From Oculina patagonica (taxonomy: Eukaryota), in the NCBI RefSeq assembly GCF_052425735.1, contig NC_135761.1, forward strand, positions 47,368,001 to 47,432,000: 64,000 nucleotides of DNA. The letters run 5' to 3'. The translations under genes were made by a program, and so were the position numbers. Positions 4,768 to 64,000 of the stretch are shown piece after piece. Position 1 is the first letter of the stretch; each line of letters starts with the position of its first letter. The notes under the pieces were generated by a model. The model did not search any database. It was not told the origin of the DNA and was given only the letters and a program-made list of their open reading frames with translations.

Positions 4768-7700
4768 ATGGAAGATGCTCTGGTTCGGAATCCAAAAGAG
4801 AAAGCAAGTTTCCTCTCGCTGTTGACTTTCTCGTGGATAAGCAATGTTCTCAAACTCGGAAGCAAACAACCATTGGACGAGAAACACTTGTTTGTAGTCG
4901 AAACTTCATATCAAACAGAAAGATTGGTCGCTGATTTGGAGAGGGAATGGCTGGCAGAAGAAAGACGGTCTGAACAAAACCGAACAAAGCCTCGCCTGTG
5001 GAAGGCCATGATGAGAGTCATTCCCTGCAGAGATTATATCGCAATGGCGTTCATTAGGTTTGGTTACACGATAGCATTGAATGTTTTTCCTTTGCTCATA
5101 TGGTTCTTCTTGAGAAACATTTCTACAGCTTCAGAGATGAGTTACAAGGAAACACTGCCGTTTGTAATCGGCATTTCTCTGGTCGCCATAGCAAGGTCTC
5201 TAGGCTTAACTCATGGGATGTTTAAGGCGGAAATGATGACGACTAGACTGAAAGCTGCGACGATTGGACTTGTGTACAAAAAGGCAAGTAATGTATCTTA
5301 GTCTTTTAAAGTGTATTACAAATGGAAAAGTATTAATTGCACATATTTGTTCGACATGGATATTTCTAAATTTCTGATATTATTATACCGCGCTTCCCTT
5401 AACCAAATGAATAACGAATGCTTAACCAATCTCGTCTTTCATGGAATAATATCTAGCAGAGTATCTTACTCAAGAATAATGCAGAAGGCTGTTTAGAATT
5501 TTTAGTAAGGGTAAAAATATTTATTTGATTTAAAAATTGTTCATTCGGCGGTTACATGTTGTATGACTAGACCAGGGCGTATGGAGAGAGGGCGTTGAAA
5601 CAAGCGTGGTCGCGCGGGAGAGCCTTGATGCAAGGTCCTGGGCACTAACGGGGGAATTTGGCCGAGGTTTCCCTGCCAAACACTACGGCGGACGGAAGCG
5701 GCGGTTCAAATTTCAGCTTAGCAGGTGATTTAGAAGAAGTTCTAAAGTTTGACGTGACTGATGATTTTGAAGAATTACTTGACGTACAAGAGGAGATTAT
5801 GGAAAGCTCGTCAAATACGGAATTTAACCAAGAGGGGGAGAACTTGAAAATGTATTATGCGAGGATTGCAACAAAAAGCTTCAATATTCCAGAAGAGTAT
5901 GAAATTGCGTCAAGGGTGACGGGGAAAACAGACAGAAACTCGACATCTGTTACTACAGCGGCTATACCCTACATCAAGGGCACTGAGACTATTTCGCGGA
6001 TTCTACAACCCTACTATTTTCGTGTAGCTCACATACCTATAACTACGTTACGACATTTACTAACTAACGTTAAAGACAGGGACGAACCTAACGACAGACA
6101 GCGAGCGATTTATAAGATTAAATGCTACGACTGCCAGGCCTCCTACATCGAAGAGACCTGTAGAAACCTGACCACGAGACTGACTGAATACAAAGGAGCG
6201 ACGAGAAATGGTGATGTCAACAATCACATTTCTGAACACCATCGACTTACTAACCACAAAATCGACTGGGACTCTGCTGAATGTTTAAATTACAGTACTA
6301 ACTATTTTCAACGACTGACTTTGGAAAGCTGGTACACAAACTAAGAACAAACGCCTATAAGCAGATGTCAACAACTACCGGCACCTGACAAACGACTTAT
6401 TTACGACTAAAACAGAACCGACAAACGGACCGCTAACAGAACGACTTAAATTTGACTAACAATAGACGGAACATAACGACTTAATTTGACTAACAATAGT
6501 CGGGTCGAAACTGACCAATTACTGTCGAAAAACTTTAAACGAGTCTTACAGCCAATAACATCACGGCTAAACTGACCAATCAACTTCGACGGACCAGACT
6601 TATAGCATCATCGACTGACAACAACGTTTCACTTGACTCTGACTTCCGCTGAGGTTGTTGAAACGTCAGTCGCCAACAATAGTTCTTCTCAGAACTACTC
6701 TCACCCGGACGATCATACTCTACGACCAACGGATTGTATGTTGTTAAACATCTTTATTCGTTAGAAATAGCTTTAAAATGCTACGAAGAACTAAGAAGAA
6801 ATCTTCTTGACATTTGAGGCTGACTGTCACAACGAAACGTCCCAAGAATGTATATATTATGATTGCGTGCAGGATCTCTAATTTGCATAAAAAAACAGAC
6901 ATTGAATTCCTAGGGTCCCTGACAAGCCTCGCAGCGCACGTTCAAATAGGCCATTTACGATCTATTAATATTCTAACTTGGCTGCGAGGCTTGGGGGAAT
7001 AAAACAAAAGAAATGATTTATTCATTCCTGAACCTCGACGTGATATCTTTTGTTTATTCCCCCAAGCCGCGGACCCAAGTTAGAATTTTAATATATCGGA
7101 AATGGCCTATTTTAGCGATGTGACTGCCATGTTTTGAAACAGCCAATCAAAAAAATTGAAATTACTTGACCAGATCTTGCCTTCCGGTTCGTCCACCCGT
7201 GCGTTCTGGGAACGAGACTGGATGACGATTAGATAGGCCATTTCCGAGTTATCCTTTGCCTCTGTTTCAAAACGAGTCTACTTGCGAAACCATTCAAATG
7301 AAAATGAGTTTGATTTGCATGAAAATGGACTTGTTGGTGACACTTAATAATAAAGCTAAGTTCAAGCCTACTTGACAAATACGGTAGTTTTGGGCCTTAA
7401 CAGGGGCAGTCCTAAGACACCGTGACTTCGACGCTGTTACTGATTTTTTATATAATCTAGGGAGAATCGCCATAGAAATATTTTCTTTTGCCGGCGTGAA
7501 GATAACACTCGACTGGGAAAATCTACGCCCATGTAGTATTTGCAGAAACTTGTCCCGAAACATGCCACTCGCTCCTTGCTCATTTAAATTTTAAGTTTCC
7601 TCTGTGAAGAAATCGATGTGGTCATGGTTGCTAACATGATAAGCCTATAACCGAAGAAATTACTGTGAGGCGTTGTCATATATTGGTCAGCGGTTTTGTA

Positions 7701-10700
7701 CGCATGCTCAATAAAGGGCGGACCCTGTTCGTGTTTGGCCGCCATGTTGAAATGTAGTGTTTTGTGGCGTGTGTTTTTATCTGGCCTAATCAGACCTATT
7801 AGAAGCCATCCAAAGGTTTCTCGATATTTAACACTGGCGACGAGGACGGGATTGACTAACTAACAAAGAATGGCGGCAGTTAACATCAAAATTCAAGGAG
7901 TAGCTTCGTTCGATTGCAAAGGAAATTCGTCTACATTGCGACCACATTGGAAAAAATGGCTTCAATCGTTTCAACACTTTTTTGTGGCCAAAGGAGTGGT
8001 GAACGATGCACAAAAGAAGGCTTTGCTTCTTCACACCGCGGGAATTGAGGCATTTTGTCAAAAAAAGTCGTAGTAAGCCACACTATTTTAGAATCATCCT
8101 CAGTCATAACAAATCAATGAAATGAGATACTGTGAATCCTGAGCTACAAAGCCACAGATGGGAACAGCTCGTAAGTTCATATGGGATTCACTCACGCGCT
8201 CTTCCCATCTGTGGCTTTGTAGCTCAGATGGTAAAGCAGTGGTCATGTAACCCGAAAGTCGTGGGTTCCAGTCCCACCTGAGCCACTGAATTTTTTTCAG
8301 TGCCCAGGTTTTACAGTGTCTCATTTCATTTATTTGTTAAGCCACACTATCTTCACACATTAGAGCCATTTTCTGAATAAAATGAATAAGCGACTTACGG
8401 TAAGCTCTTCGGTTATAGGCTTATCATGTTAGCAACCATGGTCACATCAATTTCTTCACAAGGGAGTTGTGCACGAGGAAGATATGACTTTTAAGTAAAA
8501 AAGAAAATTCTGGAACTTTATCAGCTTTTTATACTGACTTTATTTTCCAGATCCTTAATCTTAATAGATGTACTTTACAAGACACCATTTCAGAAAACAC
8601 CATCAACTTGGTTTCCAACGATGCTCAAGCTATCGAAAAGTTAAGTCTCCCCAGTTTTGTATTTCCATTTGCTCCACTGGACCTCGTTATCTCCATGGCT
8701 CTTCTGTGGTATTTATTAGCATGGCAAGCCTTAATAGGAGCTTCTTTCTTTCTTCTTGTTGTGGTGTATGGATCGTTTGCAGCTCATAAGATTGGGAAGG
8801 TTCGCCACCAATCAGCCGCAGAAACTGACAAACGATTGGAAATGATGAAAGAAGTTATTGCAGGAATCCGCGTAGTTAAAATGTACGCCTGGGAATGGAA
8901 TTTCAGGGATCTGGTTGCACAAATAAGGAAGTTAGTACAAATTTTTTATTTAACTGTTAAGCTACATGGCCGCCTTTTTAATCACCGATCGCGAATAGTA
9001 AACGAGGCCAGGCTACGTCGACACTCTCATGTCGACCGGGAAGAAGCGGCATAATTATTACAAACGGTAAAACAGTCAAAAGGCAACGAGATTCAGTATT
9101 CTTAAGCCGAAAGTCGAAATATAAAATGCTATTCCAAGGACAACGCGCACGCATCTAGCTGTATAATGAGGGCCCATTAGCAAATAGCAATCAACAAACG
9201 AATCAGTAGGATTTACGGATTTCCAAAAGCAAGTTGAAAATGAGCCCCAGTTAGAAAATGGCTACTAAAAGACGTTTGTTCGCTTTAGCAAAAAAGCTCC
9301 TCGTAGAAGAGGGGATACTGCTCAGTGCTACAACACGGACAGGTGTTGAGTAAATTGCACAGCTATCATCATATTTAAACAATGTGAATCCAGTGTTTAG
9401 GATAAGCGTTAAGAAAATCCAGAGCGGCTAGATTGAAATATCCTGCCTAGAAATAGTTTTGAGGTTTTGACGCCATTTTAAGTTCTAAAACCGTATTATC
9501 GATATCGCGTATAAAACCAGCGTGTTTGGGGAGAGGTGAATAGATGTTTTATTTAGAGCTCGATAAGTTAATGAAATGTAACAATTTTTCTTTGAACAGA
9601 AAGGAAATCTCCTTGATTCGCATCCGAGGATTCATGATCTCAAGTATCTACGCCTTGTTCTTCACCAGCTCTGCCATGGCAGGATTCGTTTCAGTCACAA
9701 TAATGCTATTTACAAAGCATTCACTAACGTCGTTTAAAATCTTTACGCTAATTTCTATCTTATCTAACATCAAATTCATCGTCACGATTTTTATAGCAGA
9801 AGCATTATACCATATTGCGGATGCGAGAACTGCATGTAATAGGATGCAACGCTTGATAGAAAAGAAAGCTATCTTAACACGTGAAATGGATCACAAAGAT
9901 AAACTGTATCCTTTAGAAGTTTACTTCAGAGGTAGAAGGTATAAACCACAATTCATTAGGACTCAAAGTTTTAGAAATGGAAGACCAGCCTTGGTTAGTG
10001 CTCGGAAACTTAAACAGACATCTCAGCACATCCAACCACAGGCATTTCTTGAGAACGTTTCATGTTTCTGGAGCCAAATGTCAGAACGTCCTGCGTTACG
10101 GAATGCATCATTGGGTGCTACTAATGGTCAACTTATTGGTATAACAGGGCCAGTTGGAAGCGGCAAAACATCTTTGCTGATGTGTATCTTAGGAGAACTT
10201 CCAATCTCTTCTGGGAAAATCTCTTGTATTGGAAAAATAGCTTATATCTCCCAAACGCCTTGGGTCTATTCTGGCACTGTGCGAGAAAACATAGTTTTTG
10301 GTAACCAGTTTGTTGAACAAAAATACAACAAGGTTATCGAGGTCTGTGACTTGCAGAAAGATATAGAACACTTTACAAAACATGATCTAACGGAGATTGG
10401 ACAACGTGGAGTAATCCTCAGTGGTGGTCAGCGTGCACGAGTGAGTCTGGCACGCGCAATCTACTCAGACGCGGACATCTACCTATTGGATGACCCACTC
10501 AGTGCAGTGGATGCTAAAGTCGGCAAACATTTGTTTGAGAGATGCATCAAAGAGTTCCTAGAGGGGAGGATACGTATCCTGGTCACTCATCAGTTACAGT
10601 TTCTGGAACAAACAGACAGCGTTGTTATGCTACGGAATGGCTCCGTTGTTCGTCAAGGAACGTATAGTCGAATTGAAAAGGACAAGCAAGTGGCTTCTTA

Positions 10701-12376
10701 TTTCCTATCTCAAGCAAAACAAGACCTCAATGGCGAGATTGATAGTAACGAGATTTCTTTATTTTCTACTGAAGACACCTTCAAATCGATGAATGCTGCC
10801 AAAGCAGACCGTGACAGGGTGGATCTGAAAGAAGAAGAAGAGGACAGAATGGTTGGAACTGTCAAGTGGTGGTTGTACTGGAAGTATTTTAAAGCTGCAC
10901 TTCCAACAGTTTTGATAATCGGCCTTATTGTGTTCTTTGCTATTGTTCAGGGTAAGCAATAGTTTAAGTACGGGTATTCCCTGAATTTCGAAGATCCACA
11001 TAAAGTAAACATAAAAGATATTAGTTAATCTATTTACATAGCTCTTTTTAATAGAAGTTAGTATAAGTTCTTTTCTTTTTATCATTACATCATTACATTG
11101 GTTATGAGAAAAGAAAGGACGCCACGTTCTAGTGAAAACATCGTAGAAAACGTACATCAAATTGCAAGGAAGTTTTCTTTAAAGCCAGAAGTCCATTTAT
11201 TTCTTCATGTTTAAGTATATCAAATAAACTGGAATTGCGATTGAAGAGAATAGCTAGAGATATGGCACTAACTACTGGGTTGTCCCGAGGAGACTCGTGG
11301 TGAACCATGCGTTAATACCATTTCCATATCTGATAAATGTACTGTTAGGCAACATGGTTCAATTGGATTCCCCCATAGCTGAGTGGTATCCAGCAGGAAC
11401 CTGGCTTCATTGTTTGTGTTTGATGAATTTGACTTGAGCGCACAAGTCACATTTATAAACTTGTACGGAAATTTAGCCTCTTTTAAGCATCGTTATGTTG
11501 GTAAGAGTCGTCCTAAAATAAAAGGACACGACTTCTTCCGCACAAATCATTTAGTTATTTAAGTGTTGGTGTCGCCAAGTGTTATTAATTCGTAACTTTG
11601 AAGAAAGGACACGACTACTTTCACAGAAAGCCATGCGTTATTGATCTGGTAACCAAATTTAGTGTAAACGTTTGTTTTCTGTTTCAGTGTTCTGGATTGC
11701 GCCCTATTGGTGGCTCTCACGCATCTCTGAAATGCCATTGGAGCAACAGAAGAGCCACAAAACGCTTGTGGTGTACGGATCCATTGTGACTGTCTCCTTA
11801 CTTCTTACGATAATATCCTCCTTCTGTTTCTACCTCGCTGCTTTAAAGGCTTCAGAAAACCTCCATGACCAGATGACAAAAGCTACTTTGAAAGCACCGG
11901 TCCTATTCTTTGATACTAACCCAGTTGGTCGCATCTTAAACCGCTTCTCTAAGGATATCGGGAGTATGGACGATATACTTCCAGGACAGTTCCTTTTTGC
12001 CACGCAATTGTGCCTGTACTTTTTCAGTGCTACCATACTTTCAGCGGTGACAAATGTGTGGCTTTTTATCACTTGTACCCCCTTAATAGTCTTGTTTATT
12101 TACCTCGCTAAATATTATTTGAAATCCGCTCGGGAGATAAGACGACTTGAAGCAATAACGTGCAGTCCAGTGTACTCCCTTATTGCTGATACTGTGGCAG
12201 GACTGGAAGTAATTCGCTCATCAGAGATGGAGGATGATTTCCTTCGGAAATTTTACCAGTAAGTAAACTTATGTTAAAAACATATAATTCGTTGTCGCTG
12301 ACTAAAGAATATATAAGCTTTTGCAACTTTAATTTTAGAGACTTGAAGAAGAGAATGGCTAATAAGGAATATAACC

Positions 12377-12441
<65 letters not shown>

Positions 12442-15400
12442 GCTTTCGTAATTGCAGCTTCTTTAACACTGCCACTTTCAAAAGAAGTGACATCTATCTG
12501 TGATAGCGGCTTGTAACCAAGATTCTCTGTTGAAATGATGAGGCATAGGTTTATAACACCATTGAAACTTTATTTAAATGCGAAAATTCCATGTCAGCCA
12601 GATCAGAACTGATTACGCTGTGCGGGTTTTTAGATACCAAGACAAGAACACAGCAGCCCTGATATTATTGAAGGCCTCTACACGTTGGCTTGCTCTTCGA
12701 GGAGATGTCTTAAGTAACGTTCTTGTGACTTCCGTGTCAGCCGGAGCATTATTTGCAACACAAAGTCCAGGTAAGTGCCATCATCTGACAGACCGAGTAT
12801 ATTGGTAGACTTAATACATTGAGACCACCAAGGTTTATTTTATGTTTGTTTAACTGGAAATTGGTGTTAGCTCTGTTTTCGTACTTTTGAAAAGTAACCT
12901 GACCTTTTCCTGTTTTTTATGTACGTAGTCTGTGTATTTAATGTACAGCTTCTTTCCTCAATATTTACCGTCGCTTGCATCTAAGCGTGAACACGAGCCG
13001 CCGAAACATGATCTAATTGGGGATCAAACATGGCATGTTTCGTCATGAAATATTGAAGTTTAGCAGACCGTAACGGCAACTTTCGAGCTCAGAATGCTCG
13101 CCATAACCATTGAGTACAGGCGAAACTTTACACCAGAAGTGATTCAAGTGAACCTGCAAATGCACATCGACACAGATCAAGATCACTTTGTCGGAAGAAG
13201 TCTTCTTACTTTTTATTTCCGACATTTCGAAACGCGGAATTTGTTGAACTTTCGGCGCGAAAGTTGCCGTAACGGTTTGCCAAACTTCAACGTTAAATGA
13301 CGAATCATGCCACGTTTAAATCGAGTAGTGCATGGTCTAGTAACGTGAGACAGCGAAATAGGTTATTTGTGTTTTAGCTTTGGCAGGTATGTCCCTCACC
13401 TTTGCAGCCGAGACATTAGAAGCCTCACAGTATGGCATCCGTGTCGCCTCAGAAACAGAAAATTATATGACCTCAGTAGAAAGAGTGTTCACATACACCG
13501 AAATCGACCCAGAGCCTGGGTACAGCACCGAAACCCTTCCTTCAGAAGAGTGGCCGACAACGGGTACCTTGACACTACGTGACTTGTCATTAGCATATTT
13601 GAAAGGAGCGCCAGCAACTTTGAACAACATAAGCGCCAGTGTCGCTGATAAGGAAAAAGTTGGTGTAGCAGGTCGCACGGGAGCTGGGAAATCGTCTTTA
13701 GTGGCGGCTTTGTTTCGAATGCCAGAACCTGAAGGCGAGGTAATTATATGAGAACTGTTATTTAATATATGGCAAAGCCAGTCTTCTGAGCGTTCTACTT
13801 GGTTCGTTCTTTGTCGGGATTTTGCTAAACGTACCGACAGTTTCTATGGAAACCGTCCAAGCCGTGTACCTTAATGATTCGATTTAGCGCCCTCCTTCCA
13901 ATAAGCGCCCCCTTCCGACCGAATGTGTTTTTGTAAATAAGCGCCCCTATTCCAATAAGCGCCCCCATTCTTATTAGCGCTCCCATTCTTATAAGCACCC
14001 CTATTCTAATAAGTGCCCCTATTGTGGATAACTGGCCCTACTGAAGTCACTGACGTCAACTAGATAAACTCCTGACCGTTCACCGTACAGTTCATGTATA
14101 TATTTACTGTTAAAATGAAGAATTATTTTAAAAGTAACTGAACTTTTGACAATTTCTAACTGTTACAGTTCCTGTTATTATAAGATACATTTGGTTGTTT
14201 CTCAAAAAATTAAATAAGCGTCCTGTCCCGAATAAGCGCCCTGTCTCGAATAAGCGCCCTCCCTTGAGGTGCCAAAAGTAAATAAGCGCCCCGGGCGCTA
14301 AATTGAATCATTACGGTATTTGTTTTTCAAAAGCCTGGAGCAAATGAAAATTTGCAACCAAAACTGCGGAAGGAAATTGTGTTAATACTCTCATTCTTCG
14401 CAAAGAAACCTCCTAAAAGATTGATATTTTACAGAGTTTACAACATGGACCAGGAGGAAAAATATTTACCAACCGACTTTTACTATTCTACAGATCGGGA
14501 AACTTCTTAGACCATTATTCACTTAAAAGTACATTCGCACAATATAACGCTCATTAATAACTTTAACTGTCCTTGATATGCTTCTGGTTTAATACCATAA
14601 CTGAGAGAATTCTCGCACGCTGATTGGGCCCAAAGTTACGGTTAATGAGGGTATAGACCATGAAAGAGACATCAGATCATGCCACGCACACTCGCGGGCC
14701 TTAAATGTGCAAGTTTCGTTTCCATGAATAAAAGCGAATTTCATTTTGTTTTGTTTGAATCAAGTACGCATTTGTTTTCGGAATTTAGGATTGGACTTTT
14801 ACTCAGGTGATTTGTCGAAAGAAAATTTAAAAGACTTTGAATTTTTTGTCAAACTGAGAAGAACGGTGCTAGCGAACCGGTAGCGGACTTAGCGAACTGT
14901 CGACGTTCAGTGAACAAGCGCTAACAAAATCTTCAGAAAGAACAATCATCTTGCTCTCTTTTAGCGATAGGCACACACTCGACGAGAGAATAAAAGGTAA
15001 TTAAAATTGTTAATCTTTGAATTCTTATTCATCTTCTTTTGCATCATTGTCGTTTTAACGTGTCGGGAATTTTTACGTCTGCCCCGGCAAAGTTTCTTCA
15101 CTGACAGGAATCGCTTTTGATAAATACTTGATCGAGTTTGTTATCAGTATAAAACAAATCGACCACATTTTTCCATGTTCTGAGTGGTTCTGATTGGGTA
15201 ACTGTTGTTCTTACCACATTTTGACGTCTTCTGTGATCTAAAAATGAACAGACCCACAGTAAAATGGAATGTATTTGTTTTATACAATAACACAACAGTA
15301 AGTACACTTATATGCCGCTTCCGGTGAACTAAAGTTGTTACGTTTTCGTTTCATGAGAACGTTTTCCGTAACCATGAAGTACAGCTAAACCGATTTATTT

Positions 15401-22565: not shown

Positions 22566-22571
22566 ACGACC

Positions 22572-33046: not shown

Positions 33047-33097
33047 AAGCCATTTTCGTAGCGGGAGCGAATGAGAGGCGGCTGTATTCGCAGGCTA
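33047..33097. mobile_element. 51-bp one-ended TIR-element remnant with 9-bp TSD
   Basis: CATCTGTAA at 33038-33046 and 33098-33106; ends in CGCAGGCTA. Copy A (~4065) has the empty site. Confidence 0.65.
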
Positions 33098-48600: not shown

Positions 48601-50878
48601 TACCATCTTTCTTCCTCGCAAAATAAACTTTCAGTTCGTCTTTTGACATTTCTTTCAAAAACTTGGTGCCATTCCGAAACGGTAAGGCAAACATTGTTGA
48701 TGGTATTACTTAATCTTTTTCACTGCATAAAAAACACCATCGACATTTGCCGCACTCATTTTCCATATAAGGTCAAACGTAGGTATAATGGCTGGCAACC
48801 AAGATCCAGTGAACCAATGAGAAAGCTAGAAATGCTTTATCCTAGGTTGAGAATTTAATTAATAATTTGTATTAGCCCTTTTTTATGTCAACGTGTAATT
48901 TGTTTTGCGAACTACGATCCCATTTTGAGCGAGCTTGATTTCTACAAAAAGTATATCGTGTATATATCATTTGCTCTGTGAAAATCGTATTCGTTTAAGA
49001 TACATTTTTGAATTAAAGTATTTCTTTTACTTGGATATACTTCTATTCATTACTTGCTCCCAACCTTCCTTTTCTCTAGGCTTTTGATTCTACCAACCCA
49101 TCGCCTTCACGCCTACCAACCCTTTACCGTCCGCTCTCTCTCCCTTTGTTCTCATGGTGGGCCAGGTGACTATCGAGGAACACTCTAATGGAGAGGGCTT
49201 TTACCTGGGATTTGAAGTTTATCATTTTTCTTCTTTACAGTCACAGATATTAGTGAACATTCCGCAACCTTCAAACCTGCCCCCCCCCCCCCCCACCAGT
49301 GTCAGTCTTTTACCCTTCCGACATCTTCCCCTCGCGTATTCCACCACTTGATTCTGCCAAGCGCAAATACTATTTATTCAAGTTGTGAAAGTTGCATTGC
49401 CAGATCCCTCCCTTCTCCTTCCTTAGTCTATCCCCCTACTAACCTCTGCGTAACCTCTCCTTCAGCGGCGTTGTTTGCCGCGCGAATCTACCCTACGTTT
49501 TTTTAGCAGTTTAGCAGAGCTGGGTACAGGGTGAGTCACCGACAAAAACGAATCCTCGAGGAACCCCGAGTGAATTATGAACCGGGCTTACTCCAGACCG
49601 CCCGGTTAATAAAAAAACTCAAGCGAATTGAAAACCGGTTTGTTCCCCGGGATGCCTGTTTAATTTAACATTGATACCAACCTTCTTAATTGTGCAACCA
49701 GATCTCTGAAATTCCATTCCCAGGCATACATTTTTACCACCCGGATTCCTGTAATTATCTCTTTCATCATCTCCAATCGTTTGTCGGTTACTGCAGCTGA
49801 TTGGTGGCGTACCTTCCCAGCCTTATGAGCTGCAAACGATCCATATGCAACAACAAGAAGGAAGAAAGAAGCTCCTACCAAGGCTTGCCATGTGACTAAG
49901 TACCACACAAGAGCCATGGAGAGAACGATGTCCAGAAGAGCGAATGAAATGATATAAACGGCAAAACCCATCTGCTCGATAGCTTGTGCATCGTTGGAAA
50001 CAAGATTGATAGTGTTTTCTGAAATGGTGTCTTGTAAAGTACATCTATTAAGACTAAGAATCTGAAAAAGAAGCGAAGGAAAAATAGTTTTCTCATGTAT
50101 TTAGGACGATTCCAACAAAGTGATTTAGTTAAGCTTGGATGACAGTGCTTTTATGTCTACGTGCACAGAACCAACCCCTAATGCGAATACTGTAACAGCA
50201 ACAAAGCACTGTTTCCCATAGTCTAAAAGAGTTCCTTTCACAAATAGACGCCATTCTTCATCCGCTCGGAAAGACGAAACTGTCGGGTAAAAGGGCAAAA
50301 TCCTAAGCTGGAATTAACATGTTTGTTGTACGCTTTTAAAAATGCTAAGATGCATAACTTGCCTTTTTATACACAAGTCCAATCATGGCAACTTTCAGTC
50401 TGGTTGTAATCATTTCTGTCTTGAATACACCATGGCCTGTGAATACAGATCTTGCAATGGCGACCAAAGAAATACCAATAACAAACGGCAGTGTTTTCTT
50501 GTAACTGATGTCTGAAGCTATAGAAATGCTTCTCAAGAAGAACCATAGGAGCAAAGGAAAAACATTAAATGTTAACGTATAGAAAAACCTAAGGAACGCC
50601 ACAGTGATATAATCTCTGCAGGTAATAACTCTCATCATGGCCTTCCACAAGCGAGGCTTTGTTCGGTTTTGTTCAGACGATCTCTCTTCTGCCAGCCATT
50701 CCCTTTCCAAGTCAGCGACCAATCTTTCTGTTTGATATGAAGTTTCGACTGCAAACAAGTGTTTGTCTTCCAATGGTTGTTTGCTCCCTAGTTTTAGAAC
50801 ATTGCTTATCCAGGAGAAAGTCAACAGCGAGAGGAAACCTGCTTCTTCTTTTGGATTCCGAACCGGAACGTCCTCCAT
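42632..50878 (-). CDS. ABCC4: ABCC4/MRP4-like ABC exporter, copy C (7 coding exons, 1295 aa)
   Basis: Exons 50878-50363, 50061-49682, 47675-46324, 45618-45048, 44799-44663, 43931-43570 and 43201-42632 total 3888 nt, with the same architecture and motifs. Confidence 0.93.
48206..48600 (+). repeat. Two tandem units (~240 bp) of a tRNA-containing repeat
   Basis: TTGACCTTGCTCCC...ATAGCTCAGTTGGTAGAGCATC...GAGGTCACGG..TTC at 48206 and 48445. Confidence 0.75.
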
Positions 50879-53131: not shown

Positions 53132-53187
53132 AAGACCAAGATGAATAAATAAACAAATAATGAAATGAGAATAAATAATGTTGCAGC

Positions 53188-53419
53188 TGTAAAGAACATT
53201 CACGAACGCTTTATTGCGCAAGAACTTGTTTTGTTTGTATAGATGTAACACGTGATCACCTGAATATAATCGATTGTACATTAGACTTTGACCAGTCCAT
53301 TAGCGAAGCGAAGACGAGTACACGATATCGAGTTCGAAACGAAGTTTTATGTTGTAAATAGGGACGAAATCGCGAATTAAACGGAAATTATTCAAATCAC
53401 AAACTCGAAGTTTATTATA
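53188..53419 (+). repeat. 5' LTR of BEL/Pao element (232 bp)
   Basis: Direct repeat of 60074-60304; by eye it differs by a single 1-bp indel (TTCGAAAC vs TTCAAAC). Confidence 0.96.
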
Positions 53420-53437
53420 TGGCGCCCAACGTGGGGC
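53420..53437 (+). other. Primer-binding site, tRNA-Lys(CTT) type
   Basis: TGGCGCCCAACGTGGGGC directly abuts the 5' LTR and is the known tRNA-Lys1,2 PBS sequence. Confidence 0.88.
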
Positions 53438-53459
53438 AGTGTTAGCGATACAAACGAAT

Positions 53460-55288
53460 ATGGACGAAAAGGAGATCGAAAGGCTGGCGCGTGTTCGCGC
53501 GAAACGCGGAGGAAATCGAAGTGTAATGACGAAACTGATGTACGAAGCGGAGGGCCTGCTCGAGGCGGAACCGATCGACAAAAAACGACTGAAGGTGATA
53601 GCGGATTCCCTTGACCAAAACCTGAAGTTAGTGAAGTCTCTCGACGAAGAAGTGATCGAAACATGTAATGTGGAGGAAATCGTTAAGGAGATAGAAGATT
53701 CTGACGAAATCAACTCACGAGTGATGGAAATGTTACGAAAGATAAATGAAGCTTTGAGCCCGAAACAGAACGACCCATTGACTGGAAAGAAAGACGGGAA
53801 ACATGCAACCTCTGGTTCTCTGCAGTCGACTGGCCCGATTACGGTAGATCCACCCGAAAATGGGGATTCTGGAAACGACCAAATTCTTCAAGTCCCTGGA
53901 ACGTTTATACCTGGAATGCAACCGCCACATGTTCCTTTGACCCAAACTGGAAATACTCAAGAACCAGGGAGTTCAGGTACGGCTTTTCAATTGCCTACTA
54001 ACTTAAACACAAATGCCACAGCCTTTCAGCCGAAGGCTAAGTTACCTAAGCTCGTTCTACCGAAATTCAGAGGAGATATTACGCAATGGCAGAGCTTTTG
54101 GGATAGCTTTAACAGCGCAATCCATACTAACCCACAATTGAGTCAAATCGATAAATTCAACCACTTGCATTCATTGTTGGAGGGTCAAGCTGCACGCGCT
54201 ATACAAGGGTTGACTCGAACGGATGCGAACTACAACTCGGCAATTGAACTGTTGCACAATCGTTTTGGCAAGACCCAGAACATTATCTCAAAGTACATGG
54301 ATGAGCTGCTTAAAATTCCTGCGTGTTCAGGAGATAAGGCTTCACAACTCCGGTTCGTATACGACAAGATTAGCATTAACGTACGAGGGTTAGCGTCATT
54401 GGGAGTGAATTGTACTCAGTATGGAAGCTTATTGATTCCAGTAATAATGTCCAAATTGCCACAAGAAGTGCGAATTCAAGTCGCGAGAAACACCGCTCGA
54501 GAGGTATGGGAAATTTCAGAGTTGTTAGATGTCATCCGACAGGAAGTCGAGGCTCGAGAGATTAGCGAAGGTGTAAAAACAAACGTGAACACTACGGAGA
54601 AACCAAAACAACCGCAGTTTAAATTACCCCCAACCGCAAATACTCTTGTTTCCATGCAAGGGAAAGAATTTCAAATTCGCTGCGTTTATTGCAATGGGGA
54701 GCATTACTCAGCCTCCTGCCCGAAAGTTCGAATATCCAAAGATCGAAAAGAAATTCTACAGAAGAATAATCGTTGTTTTATTTGCCTGAAAACTGGGCAT
54801 GGGGTAAATAACTGCGTCAAAACAAGGAAATGCCGACATTGCGATGGCAGACACCATCAATCGATTTGCCCAAGAATTGACACGCCTACGGAAGAGCAAA
54901 GAAACACGAATCGAAACGAAAACTCGAAGGAATCGCAAAACGAAAGTACGACAGTAACCACGACTACAACCGCGAATTCTCTGACCAAAGGAACTGTGTT
55001 ACTTCAAACAGCAAGTTGCATGGCGATCAACGGATCCAATTCAATTCCAGTGCGCGTACTCCTCGACAACGGAAGTCAACGATCATATGTTTCATCGAGT
55101 GTGTCTTCTCGTCTAAATTTAAAGCCTGTCAGTTCAGAAAATCTGAGCATCAACACCTTCGGGGACGCAAATTACCGGAAACAAAAATGCAATGTGGTAA
55201 AGCTATGTTTACAAACACGAAGTCACGAGGAATTGGAACTCTTTGCATTGAACTACCCTGTTATCTGTTCACCGCTGCCAAGCAAAAT
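53460..55288 (+). CDS. BEL/Pao gag-pol segment 1 (Gag, zinc knuckles, aspartic protease), interrupted by an insertion
   Basis: LPKLVLPKFRGDITQWQSFWDSF; CVYCNGEHYSASC, CFICLKTGHGVNNC and CRHCDGRHHQSIC; LLDNGSQRSY. The frame runs into the nested element at 55289. Confidence 0.9.
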
Positions 55289-56141
55289 TAACCTGCGATC
55301 AGGCATTATTTTTCTCGCGGCGGAGGGGTCAACGGAAAAATGAACGCCTGATACAATTACTTGTCGAGTCGTCTGTAAAAAGTCCAGAATCTGGACTTTT
55401 TTCTGATTGGTCAGAAAACAAAAGGCAACATTAAAACTCTATCCTGATTGGCTAATTGAGTTCAAATCTAATTTCTGGTCCAAAAATATCACGCGTAGAT
55501 GATTGTTATCATGGCGGGTGTTGAGCGGAATGAAGTAGAGAGCGAGTTCTTTTAGCTTTCAGAAAATATCTCAAGAGTTTTGTTCACAAAACATTTAAAG
55601 ACGAACAAAGGGAGTGTATTCGACGAATAGTTTGTAAAAGAAAAGATGTATTGGCGGTGCTTCCGACGGAATTCGGCAAGAGCGTGATCTATCACCAATG
55701 GTGTCGAAGATTATTACATCACACCACCAAAGACGCCAGACGATAGTGCCAGTGACGAAAACTACAACCTTGAAATGTCTAATTTGAGCCTTACACAAAA
55801 TCAGCCTTTGCAGAAAACATTCTGTAGTTGCTGTGCCTCGTTCTATAAAGAGTGCCGACACGGTGGACCGAAGTGGCCCTGCATTCTGTAGTTGCTCCCA
55901 AATTTTAAAAACCATCTGATCAGCTCGTTCAAAAGGGTTATTCAAACACACGTTTGTGAGAGTAAAAATATAATTCGAAGGCGCTAATCACGCTTATCTG
56001 ATGGCATCGCCGACATTCTCGACGACGTTGACAGATACTTTAATTAGGGGGCGGCAGACGACTTCACAAGTAATTGTATCAGGCTTTCCTTTTTTCGCCT
56101 TCCCTCCGCCGCGAAAAAAAAGAAAGCCTGATCGCAGGTTA
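55289..56141. mobile_element. Non-autonomous TIR DNA transposon (AcademH-like), 853 bp, nested in BEL gag-pol
   Basis: Perfect 16-bp TIR TAACCTGCGATCAGGC; 9-bp TSD AAGCAAAAT (55280-55288 and 56142-56150); internal RecQ-like helicase remnant. Removing it restores the host frame. The element is certain; the superfamily call is inference. Confidence 0.88.
55591..55700 (+). pseudogene. RecQ-like SF2 helicase motif-I remnant
   Basis: Translates as TFKDEQRECIRRIVCKRKDVLAVLPTEFGKSVIYHQ; compare RecQ-type DVLAVLPTGxGKSLxYQ. Confidence 0.75.
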
Positions 56142-56150
56142 AAGCAAAAT

Positions 56151-57263
56151 CAATGTTGCTGACTATGTCCATTTAGAGGGCCTCGATTTTGCAGACGACT
56201 TTGACAGTACCGAATCTATTGATGTCTTGATTGGTTCCGATTACTACTGGAACTTTGTAACTGGGGATTCCATTAAAGGCGAACATGGTCCAACCGCAGT
56301 TGACAGCAAATTTGGATGGCTGTTGTCTGGACCAACATACGATCAATCATCTAGCAATGTTGTCGCTTCCAATTTGATTATTTCCGGTGAATGCAATTCG
56401 ATGTTTGGAGGACAAGATGACGAATTGGTTGAGAGTTTGAAGAAATTCTGGGAGTCCGAGAGTACTGGAATTCTAGACGACTCCAAGATCGAACGACAAG
56501 TACCCGATATCGCAAAGCAAACCGATATCTCCTTCAATGGTCGGCACTACGAGACAAGATTGCCCTGGAAAGAAGACTGCGCGCCAACCTCAAACAACTA
56601 TGGTATGTGTGTGTCAAGACTACGATCCCTGCATCATAAACTAAGGAACGAACCGAATTTACTGAGCGATTACGACAAGATCATTCGAGAACATGAACAG
56701 GCCGGAATCGTTGAAAGGATTCCCGAAGAAGAAACAAGCAGTGACACGAGTCGAGCTTATTATTCGCCACACCATGCAGTTATCAGAAAGGATCGCGAAA
56801 CAACTAAAGTACGTATAGTATACGATGGGTCAGCAAAATCGTCCAAAGAGGAACTGTCACTAAACGACTGTTTAGAGACCGGCGATAATTACATTCCGCA
56901 CATATTTGACATGCTATCAAGATTTCGAAACAACCTTGTGGGTCTTACTGCAGACATCGAAAAGGCCTTTCTGATGGTGAGCATTAAAGAAGAAGACCGA
57001 AAAATGCTACGCTTCCTGTGGTTTGATAACCCAGAGCAAGACAGACCCAAAATAGCGCAATTTCGATTCAACCGGCTTTTGTTTGGATTACGACCATCAC
57101 CTTCGATACTTGGAGCAACAATAGCTCATCACTTGTCCTTGTACAAACAAAGTGAACCGGAAATGGCAGCGCTTCTCGAAAAATCATTCTACGTCGATGA
57201 TCTGCTTTCTGGAGCTGAAAACGATGAGAAGACCCTAGAAATTTATCACAAATCGAAAAAAAA
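56151..57263 (+). CDS. BEL/Pao gag-pol segment 2 (end of protease region, reverse transcriptase)
   Basis: DVLIGSDYYW, RIVYDGS, ADIEKAF, LLFGLRPSP and YVDD. It ends at an A8 run where the frame shifts. Confidence 0.9.
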
Positions 57264-60034
57264 TAATGGCAGACGGAGGATTCAATTTGAGAAAGTGGAA
57301 CTCTAACTCGCCTAAGGTGATGTCTGAGATTTCAAATTCTGAAAGGTCTCGAGAAGATACAATTACGCCAAGCAAATCGCGGTCAGATGTCACAATAATT
57401 GAAGATGATCAATCTTTCGCTAAAACGACTACTGGATTGGACAGTCCTTCTACGAAGGATGACACTGTCAGTAAAGTTCTAGGATTAAAGTGGAATACTC
57501 TCAGCGACGAACTTTTCTTCGATTTTTCCAGTTTACACACGTACGCGATGTCACTTCCGCTCAACAAGAGGTCCGTTTTAAAGGTCACAGCGAAGATCTT
57601 TGATCCGATGGGATTCTTAACGCCTTTCACGATAGGATTGAAGATTCTATTTCAAGAACTTTGCGTGGACAAAATCAATTGGGACGAACCGCTTCATGGA
57701 AAGCTTCTTGGAAGGTGGAAATCCTTGCTAGACGAAATCAGATGTTTCGAAACTGTGCGTATCCCGCGATGCTATTTTGTTACGACGCCTGTGGAGGTTC
57801 AAATACACGCCTTCGGCGACGCCTCCGAACACGCCTACGCCGCAGTTGTTTACTTGAGGTCTTGCTACGAAGATGGTCGTATTCACGTGAGCTTAGCAGC
57901 CTCCAAATCCAAAGTGGCACCCATGGCAAAGCAATCCATTCCGCGTTTAGAACTGTTAGGCGCTTTATCTCTTGCACGGCTAGTCGACAAGTTCAAGACA
58001 TCGATTGGAGGAAATCACAAAACTGTTTATTGGACTGACTCGATGACAACTTTGTGCTGGATCAAAAATCAAAGGATTTGGAAACAGTACGTGCAACACC
58101 GAGTCGACGAAATTCGCAGCCTAACTTCGAAGGATTCATGGCGACACTGCCCCGGTCATTTAAATCCTGCTGATTTGCCCTCGCGCGGTTTGACAGCTAA
58201 AACCCTTGCAACGTGCGAAACATGGTGGAAGGGACCCGAATTCTTGTACCTTCCCGAATCTGAATGGCCCGAGAATCGAACGACCCAGTCCGAAGATGAA
58301 TTGGTTCTCAAGGAAGTGGTCAAATCGCCGTCAACTACTGTGCACTCACTTGTGAGTAACTCAGCCAACATGCCAGAGAAGAAGATTGATCAGATAATCG
58401 ACATTAATCGATTTCACGACCTGACAAAATTACTTCGTGTTACCGCTCTCGTTATCAAGGCCGCTGAGTCATTCAAGAATTCAGTCATAAACAAAGAGGA
58501 TACTCGGAGAGAACACATGCGATTAAACGCAACAGATGTAAACGAAGCCGAACGACTGTGGATCCTTACAGTTCAACGGTCAGCCTTTTCCAAGGAAATC
58601 GCTTTTCTTCTGGGTAAAGAACGCAGTTGTACCCCTACAACGTACGTCACGCAGTTTGGATTGTTTTTGGACAAAGAAGTTATCAAGTGTAAGGGGAGAC
58701 TGAACAATGCACCGTTGCCTGTAAACACGAAGAATCCCATTCTACTGCCAGCCAAGCACGAATTCACCCGTTTACTAATCAAGCATTCACACGAGTCTGT
58801 GAAACACAGTGGTATCAGGGACACTTTAACGACATTACGAGAACGCTATTGGGTACTGCGTGGACGAGAAGCGGTGAAAGGGTTCATTCGAAGTTGCGTT
58901 ATTTGTCTCAAACACGAAGGTTCACCATACGGCCCCTTACCTCCTGACGACCTTCCTAGTAATCGAGTGTCAGAGGATCCGCCCTTTACGCATATAGGGC
59001 TCGACTTCGCCGGACCGTTGTACGTCGAAACGAAAAATTCAAAGGAAGAATGTAAAGAATCGCAAAAGGTCTATGTGTGCCTCTTCACGTGTGCCTTCAC
59101 CCGAGCTGTACATTTAGAACTAACACGAGGACTTAGTGTTGAATCGTTTTTACTTGCCTTCCGAAAGTTCACTAGTCGAAAGGGAGTGCCTGCCACCATC
59201 ACTTCTGACAACGCGAAGACGTTCAGATCTTCGTCTCAAGATATACGAAAGATAACGCGAGCAGAGGAAGTTTGGCGATACCTCGCGAACAAGCAGATCA
59301 CGTGGAATTTTATTGTCGAAAAGGCCCCGTGGTGGGGAGGATTTTGGGAACGGCTTGTGAGAAGCATCAAGAAACCCTTAAAGAAGGTCCTAGGGAGGTC
59401 TACACTCCGTTTTGACGAGTTGGAAACTGTTTTAGCGGAGATCGAAGCAGTCATCAATTCCAGACCCCTAACGTACGTGTACGATGACGAAGAGTCCATC
59501 TCTTACCCTTTGACACCTTCCGATTTGATTTATGGTCGACGAATCGCATCAACCCCGAACGCTGCTCACTATGACGTAATCAGTACCAATCAATCGCTCA
59601 CAAAGAAATTCCGTCATCATAAACATGTTCTTCAACAACTGACCAATCAGTGGCGTCGAGAATACCTACTCGAGTTGAAGGAACGATCTCAAGTTCGACC
59701 TAAGGGGAGCAACAAACGAAGTATTTCCATTGGAGACATCGTCTTGCTGAAAAACGATTCTACGAGTAGAGCTTTTTGGAAATTAGGAAAAGTCGAAGAA
59801 CTTATTCCCGGAAGAGATGGCAATGTTCGTGCGGCTGTGGTGAAATCTGTTAGTGATTCCGGTCGTCCGTCTCGTTTAAGAAGAGTCGTACAGCATTTGG
59901 TGCCCATCGAAGTAAAGGTGCAGCCTGAAGCTACAGTAACGAATGAAGTCCAATCAGCTAATCAAGGTGCAAGGCCAAGGCGCACCGCTGCAGTTGCTGG
60001 AGAGTCAAGACGAAGAGAACTTAACGTTGTGTAA
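57264..60034 (+). CDS. BEL/Pao gag-pol segment 3 (RT C-terminus, RNase H, integrase)
   Basis: FNLRKW, HAFGDASEHAYAA, IPRLELLGA, NPADLPSRG, HHCC zinc motif, GLDFAGP, SDNAKTF and APWWGGFWERLV. Confidence 0.92.
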
Positions 60035-60073
60035 ATAAGTTAGTTATTCGCTTTCACGATATAACTAGGGGAG

Positions 60074-60304
60074 TGTAAAGAACATTCACGAACGCTTTAT
60101 TGCGCAAGAACTTGTTTTGTTTGTATAGATGTAACACGTGATCACCTGAATATAATCGATTGTACATTAGACTTTGACCAGTCCATTAGCGAAGCGAAGA
60201 CGAGTACACGATATCGAGTTCAAACGAAGTTTTATGTTGTAAATAGGGACGAAATCGCGAATTAAACGGAAATTATTCAAATCACAAACTCGAAGTTTAT
60301 TATA
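60074..60304 (+). repeat. 3' LTR of BEL/Pao element (231 bp)
   Basis: Follows the PPT and is followed by the TSD GCAGC. Confidence 0.96.
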
Positions 60305-61065: not shown

Positions 61066-64000
61066 TTATGGAAAACCATTTTCAGCGGCAGTCATGTTAT
61101 AATTCTGAACAAGACGAGCGAAGACTCCATTCTTATTCTGAAGCAAAACTTCAGGTTTGTCAAACTCAACCACTCGTCCCTGCTCCATAACCAACACTTT
61201 ATCATAGTCCATGATGGTGTTCAATCGATGAGCAATGGTTACTACTGTGGAATCGTTAAATCTGTTACGTATAACTTCTTGAATCAGTCTGTCGGTCTTG
61301 AAATCCACATTAGCAGTGGCTTCATCCAGGATGATGATCTTACTTCTTTGTAACAGCGCACGCGCTAAACAAAGCAATTGGCGCTCGCCAACACTGAAGT
61401 TGTTTCCAGACTCTCTCAACTTGTACTCCAGCTGGTCAGGTAATTGTTGTACCAGGGACTTTAACTGAACATCTTCCAAAGCACGCCACAGATCAAGATC
61501 TTGATATAAAGAGAATGGGTCCAGGTTCCTCCTGAGAGTGCCGCTAAAGAGGACAGGATCCTGAGTTATCACGGACATGGACCTGCGAGACGCCTGCAGA
61601 TTAAGATCCTTGATTGTCACACCGTCTATGATAACCTGTATAATAAAAGAGCAAACGCGTCAATTTGGTAATAAAGACATATCTTTGCAATGACAGTTAA
61701 TTAAAGTTATTAATGAGCATTACATTGTGCGAATGCACATACAAGTAAATAATGGTCAAAGAAGTTTCCCGATCTATAGAATAATAAAAGTCGGTTAGTA
61801 GATATTCTTCGTTCTTGTCCATGATGTAAGCTCTGCAAAATATCTTTCTTAAATTTCGTTTCTTTGCGAAGAATAAGAGTATAATAACACATAATTAATA
61901 TTGCACATAAATAACAGTTCTTATATAATTACCTCGCCTTCAGGTTCTTGCATTCGAAAGAAAGCCGCCACTAAAGAAGATTTCCCAGCTCCGGTGCGAC
62001 CTGCTACACCAACTTTTTCCTTATCACCAACACAGACGCTTATGTTCTTTAAAGTTGCTGGCGCTCCTTTTAAATATGTTAATGACAAGTCACGTAATGT
62101 CAAGGCGCCCGTTGTAGGCCACTCGGCAGGAGGAAGGGTTTCGGTGCTGTACCCAGGCTCTGGGTCGATTTCGGTGTATGTAAACACTCTTTCTACAGAG
62201 GTCATATAATTTTCTGTTTCCGAGGCGGCACGGATGCCATACTGTGAGGCTTCTAATGTCTCGGCTGCAAAGGTGAGGGACATCCCTGCCAAAGCTAAAA
62301 CAAAAATGAACTCAAGCTCATTCTTTGTTTCATGTTACTATATGAAATCAGGCTTTGCAATTGCTCTACTTGATTTGAAAAAAATTAGACGAGAGAAATC
62401 CATTAGGACGGCAGCTAGTTTTTAATCTTAAATTATGGTTAATAACAACAGCCAGCTACAACAAGAAAAGCGTCAAGGAAAAACACTCGATTAGTAAAAA
62501 GCGTTTCGGATATTTCATACAAGACCGAGCTGGTCTTCGTCGGTTAACTAATCATCATGATGGTGTTTGACTGGTCTGCCCACTTCCAAGAAGACAAAAC
62601 TTTACTTTTTACCGCCAGTTCACACACATACGCAAAGCCATTCCATTTTCAGTTGATCCTGTTCTCTCAGTTTGAATACACACTTCAGGTACCATGAATA
62701 CATTTTACAAAAACATTTTGTTTCGTAATCGTTGCAGGTCAGTCAGTTAGAAGTACAATTACGATAATTGTTAACGAAAGGAGCTGTACATTTAATAGAC
62801 AGACTTCGTAATTAAAAAGCAGAAAAAGGTCAAGCTACTTTTTAAAAGGACAAAATCAGAGCTGATATCAATTTCCAGTTGAACAAGCATAAAATAGCAC
62901 TGGGTGATCTCAATGTATAAAGTCCACCAATATACTCAGTCTGTCAGATAATGACACTTACCTGGACTTTGTGTTACAAATAATGCTCCAGCTGACACAG
63001 AAGTCACAAGAAAGTTAGTTAAGAGGTCTGCTCGAAGGGCAAGCCAACGTGTAGAGGCCTTCAATAATATCAGGGCTGCCGTGTTCTTGTCTTGATATCT
63101 AAAAAAACCCACTCAGCTTAATCATGATCTGGCTGACATGGACATTTTCGCATTTTAAAAACGCTGTAATGGCGTATAAATAGATGTCTGAACAAACACA
63201 GTTATAGTCCCAACAGGGAATTCGTGTTAGAAGCCGCAATCACAGCTACAGTTCAATCTCTGTTATATGGCCACCGAAGGTACTGAGCAAAGTGTCCGTA
63301 TTAGAGAGGTTTCCTTATATTACTGAGGTCACCACGGTCACCTCTCTAATATGGTATTCTCTCTATTACGGACAATCTCTGATGTGCCAACAAAGTTCTC
63401 ATATAATCCCTCTAGCAAAACCCTCTTTAATATGGACCCTCTCTAATATGGACAACGGACACTAAATTTCGGCCCCAGGCGAGTTTCACTGTTTATTATG
63501 GACTCCGGTGATCAGGCGATGATATTTTTTGTGTCCGTAATGTAATTTTTCTGTTTGTGGTTTGAAAAACAGCAAAGTATCCGAGACATTTTCGGAATTG
63601 TGCTTAATGTTGATTTTTTACCTGCAGAATTGCTATGCGTACATGTAGCAGATGTAAAATTTATTACCTTCCTGATAAACATTGTAACTCGATGCTGCTT
63701 TAAATGCAGTTAAAAGAGGAATAAGGGCCTCGGTTTAGTTAATTAATACTTTAAGCTTTTAAGTCAAAATGGTTAAGTTAAGTGTTAAAGTAGTTTCATT
63801 TATGACCTCTTTCTTAAACCGGTTATTGAACCTTATTTTTATAATTCTATAAAAAAGTAAAGTTGTATAACCATATATAATTTTTTAGTCAGCGACGGTT
63901 TAACATAAGTATACTTACTGGTAAAAGTTTCGAAGGAAATCGTCCTCCATCTCTGAAGAGCGAATTAATTCCAATCCTGCCACAGTATCAGCAATGAGGG
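61066..64000 (-). CDS. ABCC4: ABCC4/MRP4-like ABC exporter, copy D (3' part; continues beyond the window)
   Basis: Exons >64000-63919, 63098-62962, 62294-61933 and 61635-61066 match exons 4-7 of the other copies in phase, and the three complete exons match in length (137/362/570 bp). Confidence 0.9.
63248..63480. mobile_element. Tc1/mariner-type MITE fragments
   Basis: TACAGTTCAATCTCTG start and repeated CTCTCTAATATGGA motifs. It is not present in the same intron of the other copies. Confidence 0.5.

Follow-up and report, generated by a model that had tools for sequence, protein, structure and literature searches.

The stretch of DNA analysed here (the window; 64,000 nt, C4:47368001-47432000) lies on the chromosome-scale contig C4 of the stony coral Oculina patagonica and carries a group of genes resembling ABCC4, the transporter also called MRP4. 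Using an open reading frame (ORF) listing, Pfam and self-BLAST, we recognised three complete ABCC4-like genes, copy A on the forward strand and copies B and C on the reverse strand, together with the 3′ part of a fourth, copy D, also on the reverse strand (Table 1). Each complete copy has seven coding exons, the first six of the same length in A, B, and C (516, 380, 1352, 571, 137, and 362 nt), and the spliced frames are open over 1295, 1299, and 1295 aa, respectively. The 1352-nt exon 3 runs from transmembrane segment 5 (TM5) through the first nucleotide-binding domain (NBD1) into the linker preceding the second transmembrane domain (TMD2). A previous sequence-only reading of this DNA had proposed at least four ABCC4-like paralogues in 64 kb, three of them complete, with open frames and the same exon 1-6 lengths, and had singled out a 1352-bp exon from TM5 to NBD1; all of this is confirmed, the exon reaching in addition into the linker. 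As for copy D, exons 5-7 are open within the window, exons 1-4 were located at C4:47431919-47436823 (locus L031), and the full coding sequence is open over 1295 aa, which makes D an intact gene.

The search was extended by adding 70 kb of flanking sequence. Tblastn with protein A over 138 kb delineates a cluster of seven members between 47.34 and 47.46 Mb of C4, six of them intact and one a pseudogene. The window takes in the central part of this cluster. Three members lie wholly outside the window, namely U1 and U2 upstream and E downstream. The intact models span 1272-1299 aa across the cluster. The pseudogene E has an exon 1 frameshift, an exon 3 cut to approximately residues 317-591, a 5-nt deletion in exon 6, and an exon 7 that is interrupted and lacks its end. 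The similarity between copies extends into the upstream regions: at 80-90% identity, self-BLAST aligns positions 2478-3243, 3423-4071, and 4558-5385 with 34136-33381, 33711-33097, and 32604-31803, respectively, while the match between the upstream regions of A and C (2481-3026 vs 53189-52655) is at 75%. These seven neighbouring paralogues, six intact and one decayed, fall into a single clade with a support of 100 in the tree of the exon 3 region described below, the pattern of a gene family evolving by birth and death. The earlier proposal of a tandem amplification is thereby borne out, the copies standing in both tandem and inverted order. The cluster is a real set of intact MRP4/ABCC4-type pump genes and, in other respects, an ordinary and partly annotated tandem array.

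The splice sites of copy A were set by frame and consensus and then projected by alignment onto the other copies. In A, B, and C all acceptors are AG and all donors are GT, with the exception of a common GC donor of intron 1 (AAG|GCAAGT), found at 5284-5285 in A, 31906-31905 in B, and 50362-50361 in C, and present in all six intact cluster members. Since the Nematostella and Pocillopora homologues have a GT donor at this position, the GC-AG intron 1 is a shared derived mark of the cluster. The assembly gap inside intron 6 of copy A begins 2885 nt past the exon 6 donor and ends 927 nt ahead of the exon 7 acceptor, and it adjoins no coding sequence. Given that the gap is confined to the intron, that the exon 6/7 junction is in phase 0, with homology to ABCC4 unbroken across it, and that this junction is seen spliced (see below), the gap has no bearing on the gene model. 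Two of the seven cluster genes are already annotated in public databases, one of them named as ABCC4-like: our model of copy B agrees at every residue with P0177 (ATP-binding cassette sub-family C member 4-like isoform X1 [Oculina patagonica]), and that of U2 with P0178 (hypothetical protein ACROYT_G016125 [Oculina patagonica]). These exact matches independently validate the gene models.

Transcription was assessed by comparing the runs X1, X15, and X16 on copy B. Run X1, which is guessed to be RNA, covers no bins other than exonic ones and displays, on the coding strand, three GT..AG joints that coincide exactly with introns 4, 5, and 6; X15 and X16 also cover introns, and are therefore DNA-like. 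In a 635-nt spliced X1 contig, exon 6 is connected to exon 7 at the positions predicted, and copy-A variants are found across introns 5 and 6. This contig carries the copy-A variants at 16 of 16 diagnostic exon 6 sites, and the four differences from B in its exon 7 are consistent with the three expected of A plus one single-nucleotide polymorphism. Hence, at least one member of the cluster, copy A, is probably transcribed and correctly spliced, the gap-bearing intron included. As a separate observation, the DNA contigs of X15 and X16 skip 311 bp within intron 4 of copy B (25980-26292), which looks like an intronic insertion/deletion polymorphism between individuals or populations.

The ABCC4-like identity given by the sequence-only reading holds up in several respects. 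In copy A, Pfam detects two ABC_membrane and two ABC_tran domains, distributed over exons 2, 3, 4, 6, and 7 in the order TMD1-NBD1-TMD2-NBD2 of a full transporter. When the exon 3 peptide was compared with solved structures, MRP4/ABCC4 was the best match (E ~1e-92), ahead of ABCC2 (5e-76) and ABCC5 (2.5e-74), with CFTR and ABCC1 also behind. Copy A (residues 8-1283) and frog ABCC4 (residues 11-1273) align end to end at 36% identity. A TMD0 is absent, the "long" ABCC proteins aligning to copy A only from approximately residue 230 on. Among named full-length relatives, the best are the ABCC4 or ABCC4-like proteins from Nematostella, frog, octopus, crinoid, clam, and arthropods. A quick maximum-likelihood tree built on the exon 3 region unites all 31 cnidarian sequences in a single clade (SH-aLRT 99), with the bilaterian ABCC4-like proteins next to it. 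The outgroup of "long" proteins was not monophyletic, two of them falling among the ABCC4-like sequences, so that the root is approximate. With its 31 cnidarian sequences and imperfect outgroup, this tree does not support one-to-one orthology with vertebrate ABCC4; as the cnidarian sequences form a clade of their own, the coral genes are at best ABCC4-type co-orthologues.

Both nucleotide-binding domains of the six intact genes contain the Walker A, signature, Walker B, and H-loop motifs. In NBD1 the Walker A reads GPVGSGKT, the signature LSGGQ, and the Walker B IYLLDD, ending in D-D and hence without the catalytic glutamate; in NBD2 the corresponding motifs are GRTG[AT]GKS, a degenerate signature FSVGE, and IIILDE, ending in D-E. 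From these motifs, one ATP site is predicted to be degenerate and the other catalytically competent, the usual asymmetry of ABCC proteins. By analogy with their family, the proteins may work as ATP-driven exporters of organic anions, conjugates, or signalling molecules; we give an export and defence function roughly even odds. The paralogues may also differ in substrate range or expression. The C-terminus of copy B (23773-23830) has diverged and is 4 aa longer than in the other copies; it ends in TSL, as does frog ABCC4, and resembles a class I PDZ ligand, whereas the other five intact copies end in FP or FS and have no C-terminal S/T-X-hydrophobic ending. To judge from these residues, copy B may have a different, putative localisation.

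The array proved to be a small part of a much larger family. The exon 3 peptide has at least 95 matches in the genome, distributed over eleven chromosome-scale contigs, most of which cover the whole 450 aa in one open frame of ~450-500 aa. With the exon 4 peptide we obtained 108 matches (139 of 139 candidates scored), of which ~91 are full-length single-exon matches at 35-63% identity. Altogether, ~90 ABCC4-like loci, counted at the level of exons, are arranged in at least 17 tandem clusters (examples in Table 1). For 23 distant paralogues, judged from loci extended by ±1.5 kb, the high-scoring segment pairs end at the copy-A exon boundaries in every case, three of the 23 having exons 3 and 4 fused. 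The exon plan 516/380/~1350/571/137 is, by these comparisons of sequence, old and family-wide, and not special to this array. The sequence-only reading had regarded the few-intron layout as the trait of a subfamily, a view that does not stand, as the same plan is found in Nematostella, in Pocillopora, and, at the level of high-scoring segment pairs or open frames, in the 23 distant paralogues and at ~90 loci. Indeed, the circumstance that it had named as speaking against its own proposal, a layout common to all ABCC4 genes of the clade, is essentially what we found, with no intron-rich ABCC4 seen among the 35 of 569 candidates scored for a crinoid query. Two further observations concern the family elsewhere in the genome. 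The loci C5:2840883-2842184 and C5:2887733-2889034 (L011 and L012) lie 47 kb from each other, are almost identical in sequence, and each have exons 3 and 4 merged into an open frame of 665-671 aa; either a segmental duplication took place very recently or the assembly contains the locus twice. At C8:12.6-13.8 Mb there are at least 11 more distant ABCC-type loci, with shorter matches to exon 4 at 29-36% identity, which seem to represent a further expanded ABCC subfamily whose exon structure is different.

We then consider how the copies have diverged. Coding DNA differs by 7-13% between copies, with 90-93% identity in exons. The lengths of homologous introns vary up to ten-fold, yet parts of them can still be aligned at 76-91% identity, most of those of copy C excepted; the earlier statement that every intron had been rebuilt by different transposons was therefore too strong. 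Nei-Gojobori (NG86) estimates of omega (dN/dS) lie between 0.19 and 0.26 in all 15 pairs of the six intact copies, with dS of 0.20-0.30 among U2, A, B, C, and D and of ~0.5 to U1. Omega values of ~0.2 at dS of 0.2-0.5 are those of selected paralogues and not of haplotypes. The suggestion that the copies had been kept by selection is in this way upheld, the selection being purifying. On the other hand, the description of the array as expanding is not supported, because dS is close to 0.2 in the youngest whole-gene pairs and one member is decaying as a pseudogene.

Divergence is uneven both along the protein and among the copies. Mean omega is 0.26 in TMD1, 0.20 in NBD1, 0.16 in TMD2, and 0.15 in NBD2, rising to 0.41 in a 40-residue linker; TMD1 is the most diverged domain, with a mean dN of 0.107 as compared with 0.032 in NBD2. 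In the 5′ 1200 nt, copy A groups with its inverted neighbour B (support 100/98), while in the 3′ half it groups with U2 (support 100/99). Approximately unbiased (AU) tests reject the alternative groupings with p-values of 0.004 and 0.0005, which are generous, as the partitions were picked after viewing a sliding window. As read from the alignment, copy A is a mosaic produced by recombination or gene conversion, and with gene conversion among paralogues dS is not a clean clock.

These data bear on the alternative that survives best, according to which the cluster would be a largely redundant product of neutral birth and death, its members kept for dosage or slowly decaying, with no copy-specific specialisation for chemical defence. 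We consider it unlikely, though it deserves to be weighed. No domain exceeds an omega of 0.41 and no sign of positive selection is visible at this resolution, the copies are homogenised by gene conversion, the members include a pseudogene and a copy that has lost 23 aa, and some 90 similar loci exist in the genome. However, an omega uniformly close to 0.2 over dS of up to 0.5 in six copies argues that each of them is functional, and the most diverged domain is TMD1, which lines the substrate path in ABCC pumps; the distinct TSL C-terminus of copy B also speaks against simple redundancy.

The origin of the few-intron layout was addressed by mapping introns on a joint alignment, the annotated proteins being threaded exactly onto their own loci. 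The ABCC4-like genes of a flatfish (Limanda), a crinoid (Antedon), and a clam (Mercenaria) have 32, 29, and 27 coding exons, respectively. The Nematostella RefSeq ABCC4 (P0175) has six (516/380/1346/571/137/920 nt) and a Pocillopora gene eight (549/380/1334/571/137/362/525/105 nt). The old JGI Nematostella models P0012 and P0010, in which parts are probably artefacts of annotation, were replaced by P0175, and the Actinia tenebrosa protein was left out of this map. Some 20 intron positions common to the three bilaterian genes are absent from the Oculina genes, which by this alignment are strongly intron-depleted relative to those of fish, crinoid, and clam. Introns 1 (172|0) and 2 (298|2) occupy the same column and phase as introns of all three bilaterians. 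Intron 3 (749|1) is 1 nt off an intron common to fish and crinoid, and intron 5 (985|1), beside a 2-aa indel, has a bilaterian intron of equal phase four columns away. Finally, intron 4 (939|2) is found in cnidarians only and intron 6 (1106|0) in corals only.

The history of intron 6 can be followed within the family. Using the Nematostella last exon as query, ~72 loci match in one open frame of ~300 aa, in which exons 6 and 7 are fused, whereas ~22 loci are split at the intron 6 position; the latter are exactly the clade formed by C4:43-44 Mb, C4:47.3, C4:52.6, and C5:20.7. Nematostella, the three bilaterians, and most paralogues lack the intron, and the Pocillopora gene has the same 362-nt exon 6. 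Its restriction to one subclade and to Pocillopora is most simply explained by a gain within the subfamily, before the Oculina-Pocillopora split, at a site reading GAG|GTT.

The sequence-only reading had proposed a retrocopy-derived or intron-stripped origin. The depletion of introns stands (27-32 exons in the bilaterian genes), whereas a retrocopy, in which all parental introns are lost and any introns present are new, does not fit the map: two ancestral introns are kept at exact positions and phases, which excludes a classical retrocopy and fits massive intron loss. It is nevertheless worth stating what such a history would require, that is a processed retrocopy of an intron-rich ABCC4 that lost all introns, gained six, and was amplified locally. 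The scarcity of introns, the long intron-free stretches such as the 1352-nt exon, and the lack of a bilaterian counterpart for two of the six introns (939|2 and 1106|0), one of which was demonstrably gained, are all compatible with it. The exact ancestral placement of introns 1 and 2 and the near-coincidence of introns 3 and 5 (within 1 nt or four alignment columns) contradict it. Moreover, the layout is older than the split between anemones and corals and common to ~90 paralogues, so that there is no recent pair of parent and retrocopy, and a search of the genome with the crinoid ABCC4-like query returned long-exon loci only, with no intron-rich ABCC4 among the 35 of 569 candidates scored. 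A recent retrocopy origin was accordingly rejected, with 172|0 and 298|2 retained and the layout old, and we regard any variant of it as very improbable.

That one or two genes appear several times as uncollapsed haplotypes or through duplication in the assembly, as the gap in copy A and the near-identity of some ABCC pairs elsewhere (C5:2.84 and C5:2.89 Mb) might suggest, can be dismissed, given coding differences of 7-13% and dS of 0.2-0.5, the different lengths and transposon contents of the introns, the different orientations of the copies and their position within one contig, more than 100 of ~250 DNA contigs, from runs under two organism labels, that match copy B at ≥99%, and a transcript contig specific to copy A.

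We therefore favour the following structural and evolutionary account of the cluster, to which we assign a probability of about 0.8. The six-exon plan (516/380/~1350/571/137/~920 nt) would have arisen through the loss of at least 20 ancestral introns before the split between anemones and stony corals, and the gain of intron 6 in the subclade that includes the C4 cluster would have created the seventh exon. The cluster would then have grown by duplication, in tandem and inverted, of whole genes along with ~2 kb of upstream sequence. After duplication, birth and death would have followed, with one copy carrying an in-frame deletion and one decaying. Exons would have remained under purifying selection, with segments exchanged between paralogues by recombination or gene conversion, while introns would have changed freely through indels and transposon insertions.

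Several points weigh against this account or against its functional extension. The ground for an export and chemical-defence role is family membership and nothing else. Support for expression comes from Logan contigs of a single run, guessed to be RNA, that can be assigned to copy A only. Introns 3 and 5 can be homologised with bilaterian introns only approximately, and the cnidarians sampled all belong to Hexacorallia, which limits the depth that can be given to the intron loss. The pairwise NG86 estimates are distorted by gene conversion. Finally, the genome-wide counts are exon-level six-frame matches and not curated genes, some of the loci carry stops, and a few near-identical locus pairs could be assembly duplicates.

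The family-wide picture (~90 loci, an ancient six-exon plan, an intron gain, and mosaicism) is more interesting than the array itself. We tentatively suggest, at odds somewhat short of even, that stony corals carry the largest animal ABCC complement yet seen and that the C4 cluster is a recombining module of a diversifying exporter repertoire. If true, this repertoire would matter for the chemical defence of corals or for the exchange of metabolites with symbionts. A limited search of the literature, which is no proof of novelty, found no description of a coral ABCC4-like expansion, its family size, or its exon plan. The ABCC4 KEGG module takes in several coral genes (PMC6505131), a homologue of ABCC4 was an outlier in a coral adaptation scan (PMC11874183), and population-genomic scans have already picked out coral ABCC4-like genes as outliers (PMC11874183, PMC6505131). 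A single coral "ABCC4" hit would in fact be one of ~90 recombining paralogues, which affects read mapping, SNP calling, and claims of selection. The six-exon plan and the one derived intron offer a simple structural marker for sorting the family, and the family as a whole is a clean example, among animal genes, of massive intron loss followed by rare intron gain.

The remaining features of the window are mostly repetitive. Between C and D lies a BEL/Pao-type long terminal repeat (LTR) retrotransposon that is not part of the ABCC genes. Its LTRs (53188-53419 and 60074-60304, 232 bp) are 99.6% identical, which points to a recent insertion; it has a gag-like ORF (DUF1759/DUF1758), and its pol domains RVT_1, Peptidase_A17 (Pao), Integrase_H2C2, and rve are spread over separate ORFs. 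Searches of the coral's own genome at the DNA level identified two dispersed repeats, one in each of the two large introns of copy A, with 3153 first-look candidates for the whole 3267-nt intron 1 query and 2805 for the whole 2885-nt intron 6 query. At 38216-39913 there is a ~1.7-kb element with ~180-bp inverted repeats (38216-38395 vs 39913-39747, 89%), whose outer ends begin with a tRNA-like segment and whose extremely G-rich, purine-rich core (38.6-39.1 kb) has a GC content of 0.49; it is probably a foldback or SINE-derived (short interspersed nuclear element) repeat. Rfam tRNA matches of 34-44 bits occur at 1771-1843 (-), 8213-8285 (+), 34377-34449 (-), and 48227-48299 (+), two of them within introns (A intron 1 and C intron 2), and are more likely heads of tRNA-derived SINEs than functional tRNA genes. 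No Pfam match was obtained for the intergenic and intronic ORFs at 5658-6344, 38567-39148, 38768-39145, 39688-40104, and 53300-53713.

Table 1. Features of the window, other members of the C4 cluster, and examples of tandem clusters elsewhere. Positions are those of the window unless a contig is named.
Feature	Position	Strand	Remarks
U1		+	intact, 1296 aa
U2		+	intact, 1272 aa; 69-nt in-frame deletion (23 aa) in exon 3
Upstream (promoter) region of A	2478..4767	+	inverted duplicate upstream of B, partial one upstream of C
Copy A	4768..18274	+	ABCC4-like, intact, 1295 aa; single terminal stop
Copy A exons	4768-5283, 8551-8930, 9600-10951, 11688-12258, 12634-12770, 13378-13739, 17705-18274	+	
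Dispersed repeat, ~810 bp	5926..6734	.	copy A intron 1; at least 45 scored copies, 90-93%, many chromosomes
Young dispersed repeat, ~805 bp	15603..16405	.	copy A intron 6; at least 39 scored copies, 95-96%
Assembly gap, 153 N	16625..16777	.	sole N run of the window; inside copy A intron 6 (13740-17704)
Copy B	23773..32422	-	ABCC4-like, intact, 1299 aa; tail-to-tail with A
Copy B exons	32422-31907, 30234-29855, 29486-28135, 26877-26307, 25972-25836, 25203-24842, 24354-23773	-	
Upstream region of B	32423..34136	-	homologous to that of A
Copy C	42632..50878	-	ABCC4-like, intact, 1295 aa
Copy C exons	50878-50363, 50061-49682, 47675-46324, 45618-45048, 44799-44663, 43931-43570, 43201-42632	-	
BEL/Pao-type LTR retrotransposon	53188..60304	+	between C and D
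Copy D, 3′ part	61066..64000	-	exons 7-5 and start of exon 4; rest past window end
Copy D exons in window	7: 61635-61066; 6: 62294-61933; 5: 63098-62962; 4: from 63919 to window end	-	
E	C4:47447427-47459295 (L035/L036)	+	pseudogene
Tandem clusters, examples (Mb)	C2:28.1-29.0, C3:4.1-4.2, C3:8.6, C3:25.05-25.12, C4:43.3-44.6		
Tandem clusters, further examples (Mb)	C5:2.7-2.9, C12:12.3-12.5, C12:18.9-19.2, C13:29.7-29.8, C14:13.26-13.33		

Compared with known systems, the coral genes share with vertebrate ABCC4/MRP4 (structures such as 8BJF and 8SX7) the short-MRP architecture without TMD0 and the same asymmetry of the nucleotide-binding domains; they differ from it in their relation, which is one of many-to-one co-orthology, and in having 6-7 coding exons, as compared with 32 in the flatfish ABCC4-like gene. 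Counterparts annotated as ABCC4, ABCC4-like, or MRP4-like are found among anthozoans: Nematostella P0175, Pocillopora meandrina P0180, and Actinia tenebrosa P0179 have 43-44% full-length identity to the Oculina proteins and belong to the same cnidarian clade. The Nematostella and Pocillopora meandrina genes have the exon plan 516/380/~1350/571/137 and the intron phases of Oculina, although Nematostella has a fused 920-nt last exon in place of the two exons that intron 6 separates in the Oculina C4 cluster and in the Pocillopora gene. Lineage-specific expansions of ABCC genes in mites, insects, and sea urchins are taken as a mark of detoxification or metabolite-export capacity. In the mite Tetranychus urticae, 39 ABCC genes were found among 103 ABC genes, then reported as the largest metazoan ABC set (PMC3724490). 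There too, related short-MRP genes lie adjacent to each other, share a conserved exon pattern, and are ascribed to repeated tandem duplication, discussed in terms of detoxification capacity (PMC3724490). The coral expansion is independent of that of the mite, took place in another lineage, and is larger at the exon level, with ~90 ABCC4-like loci.

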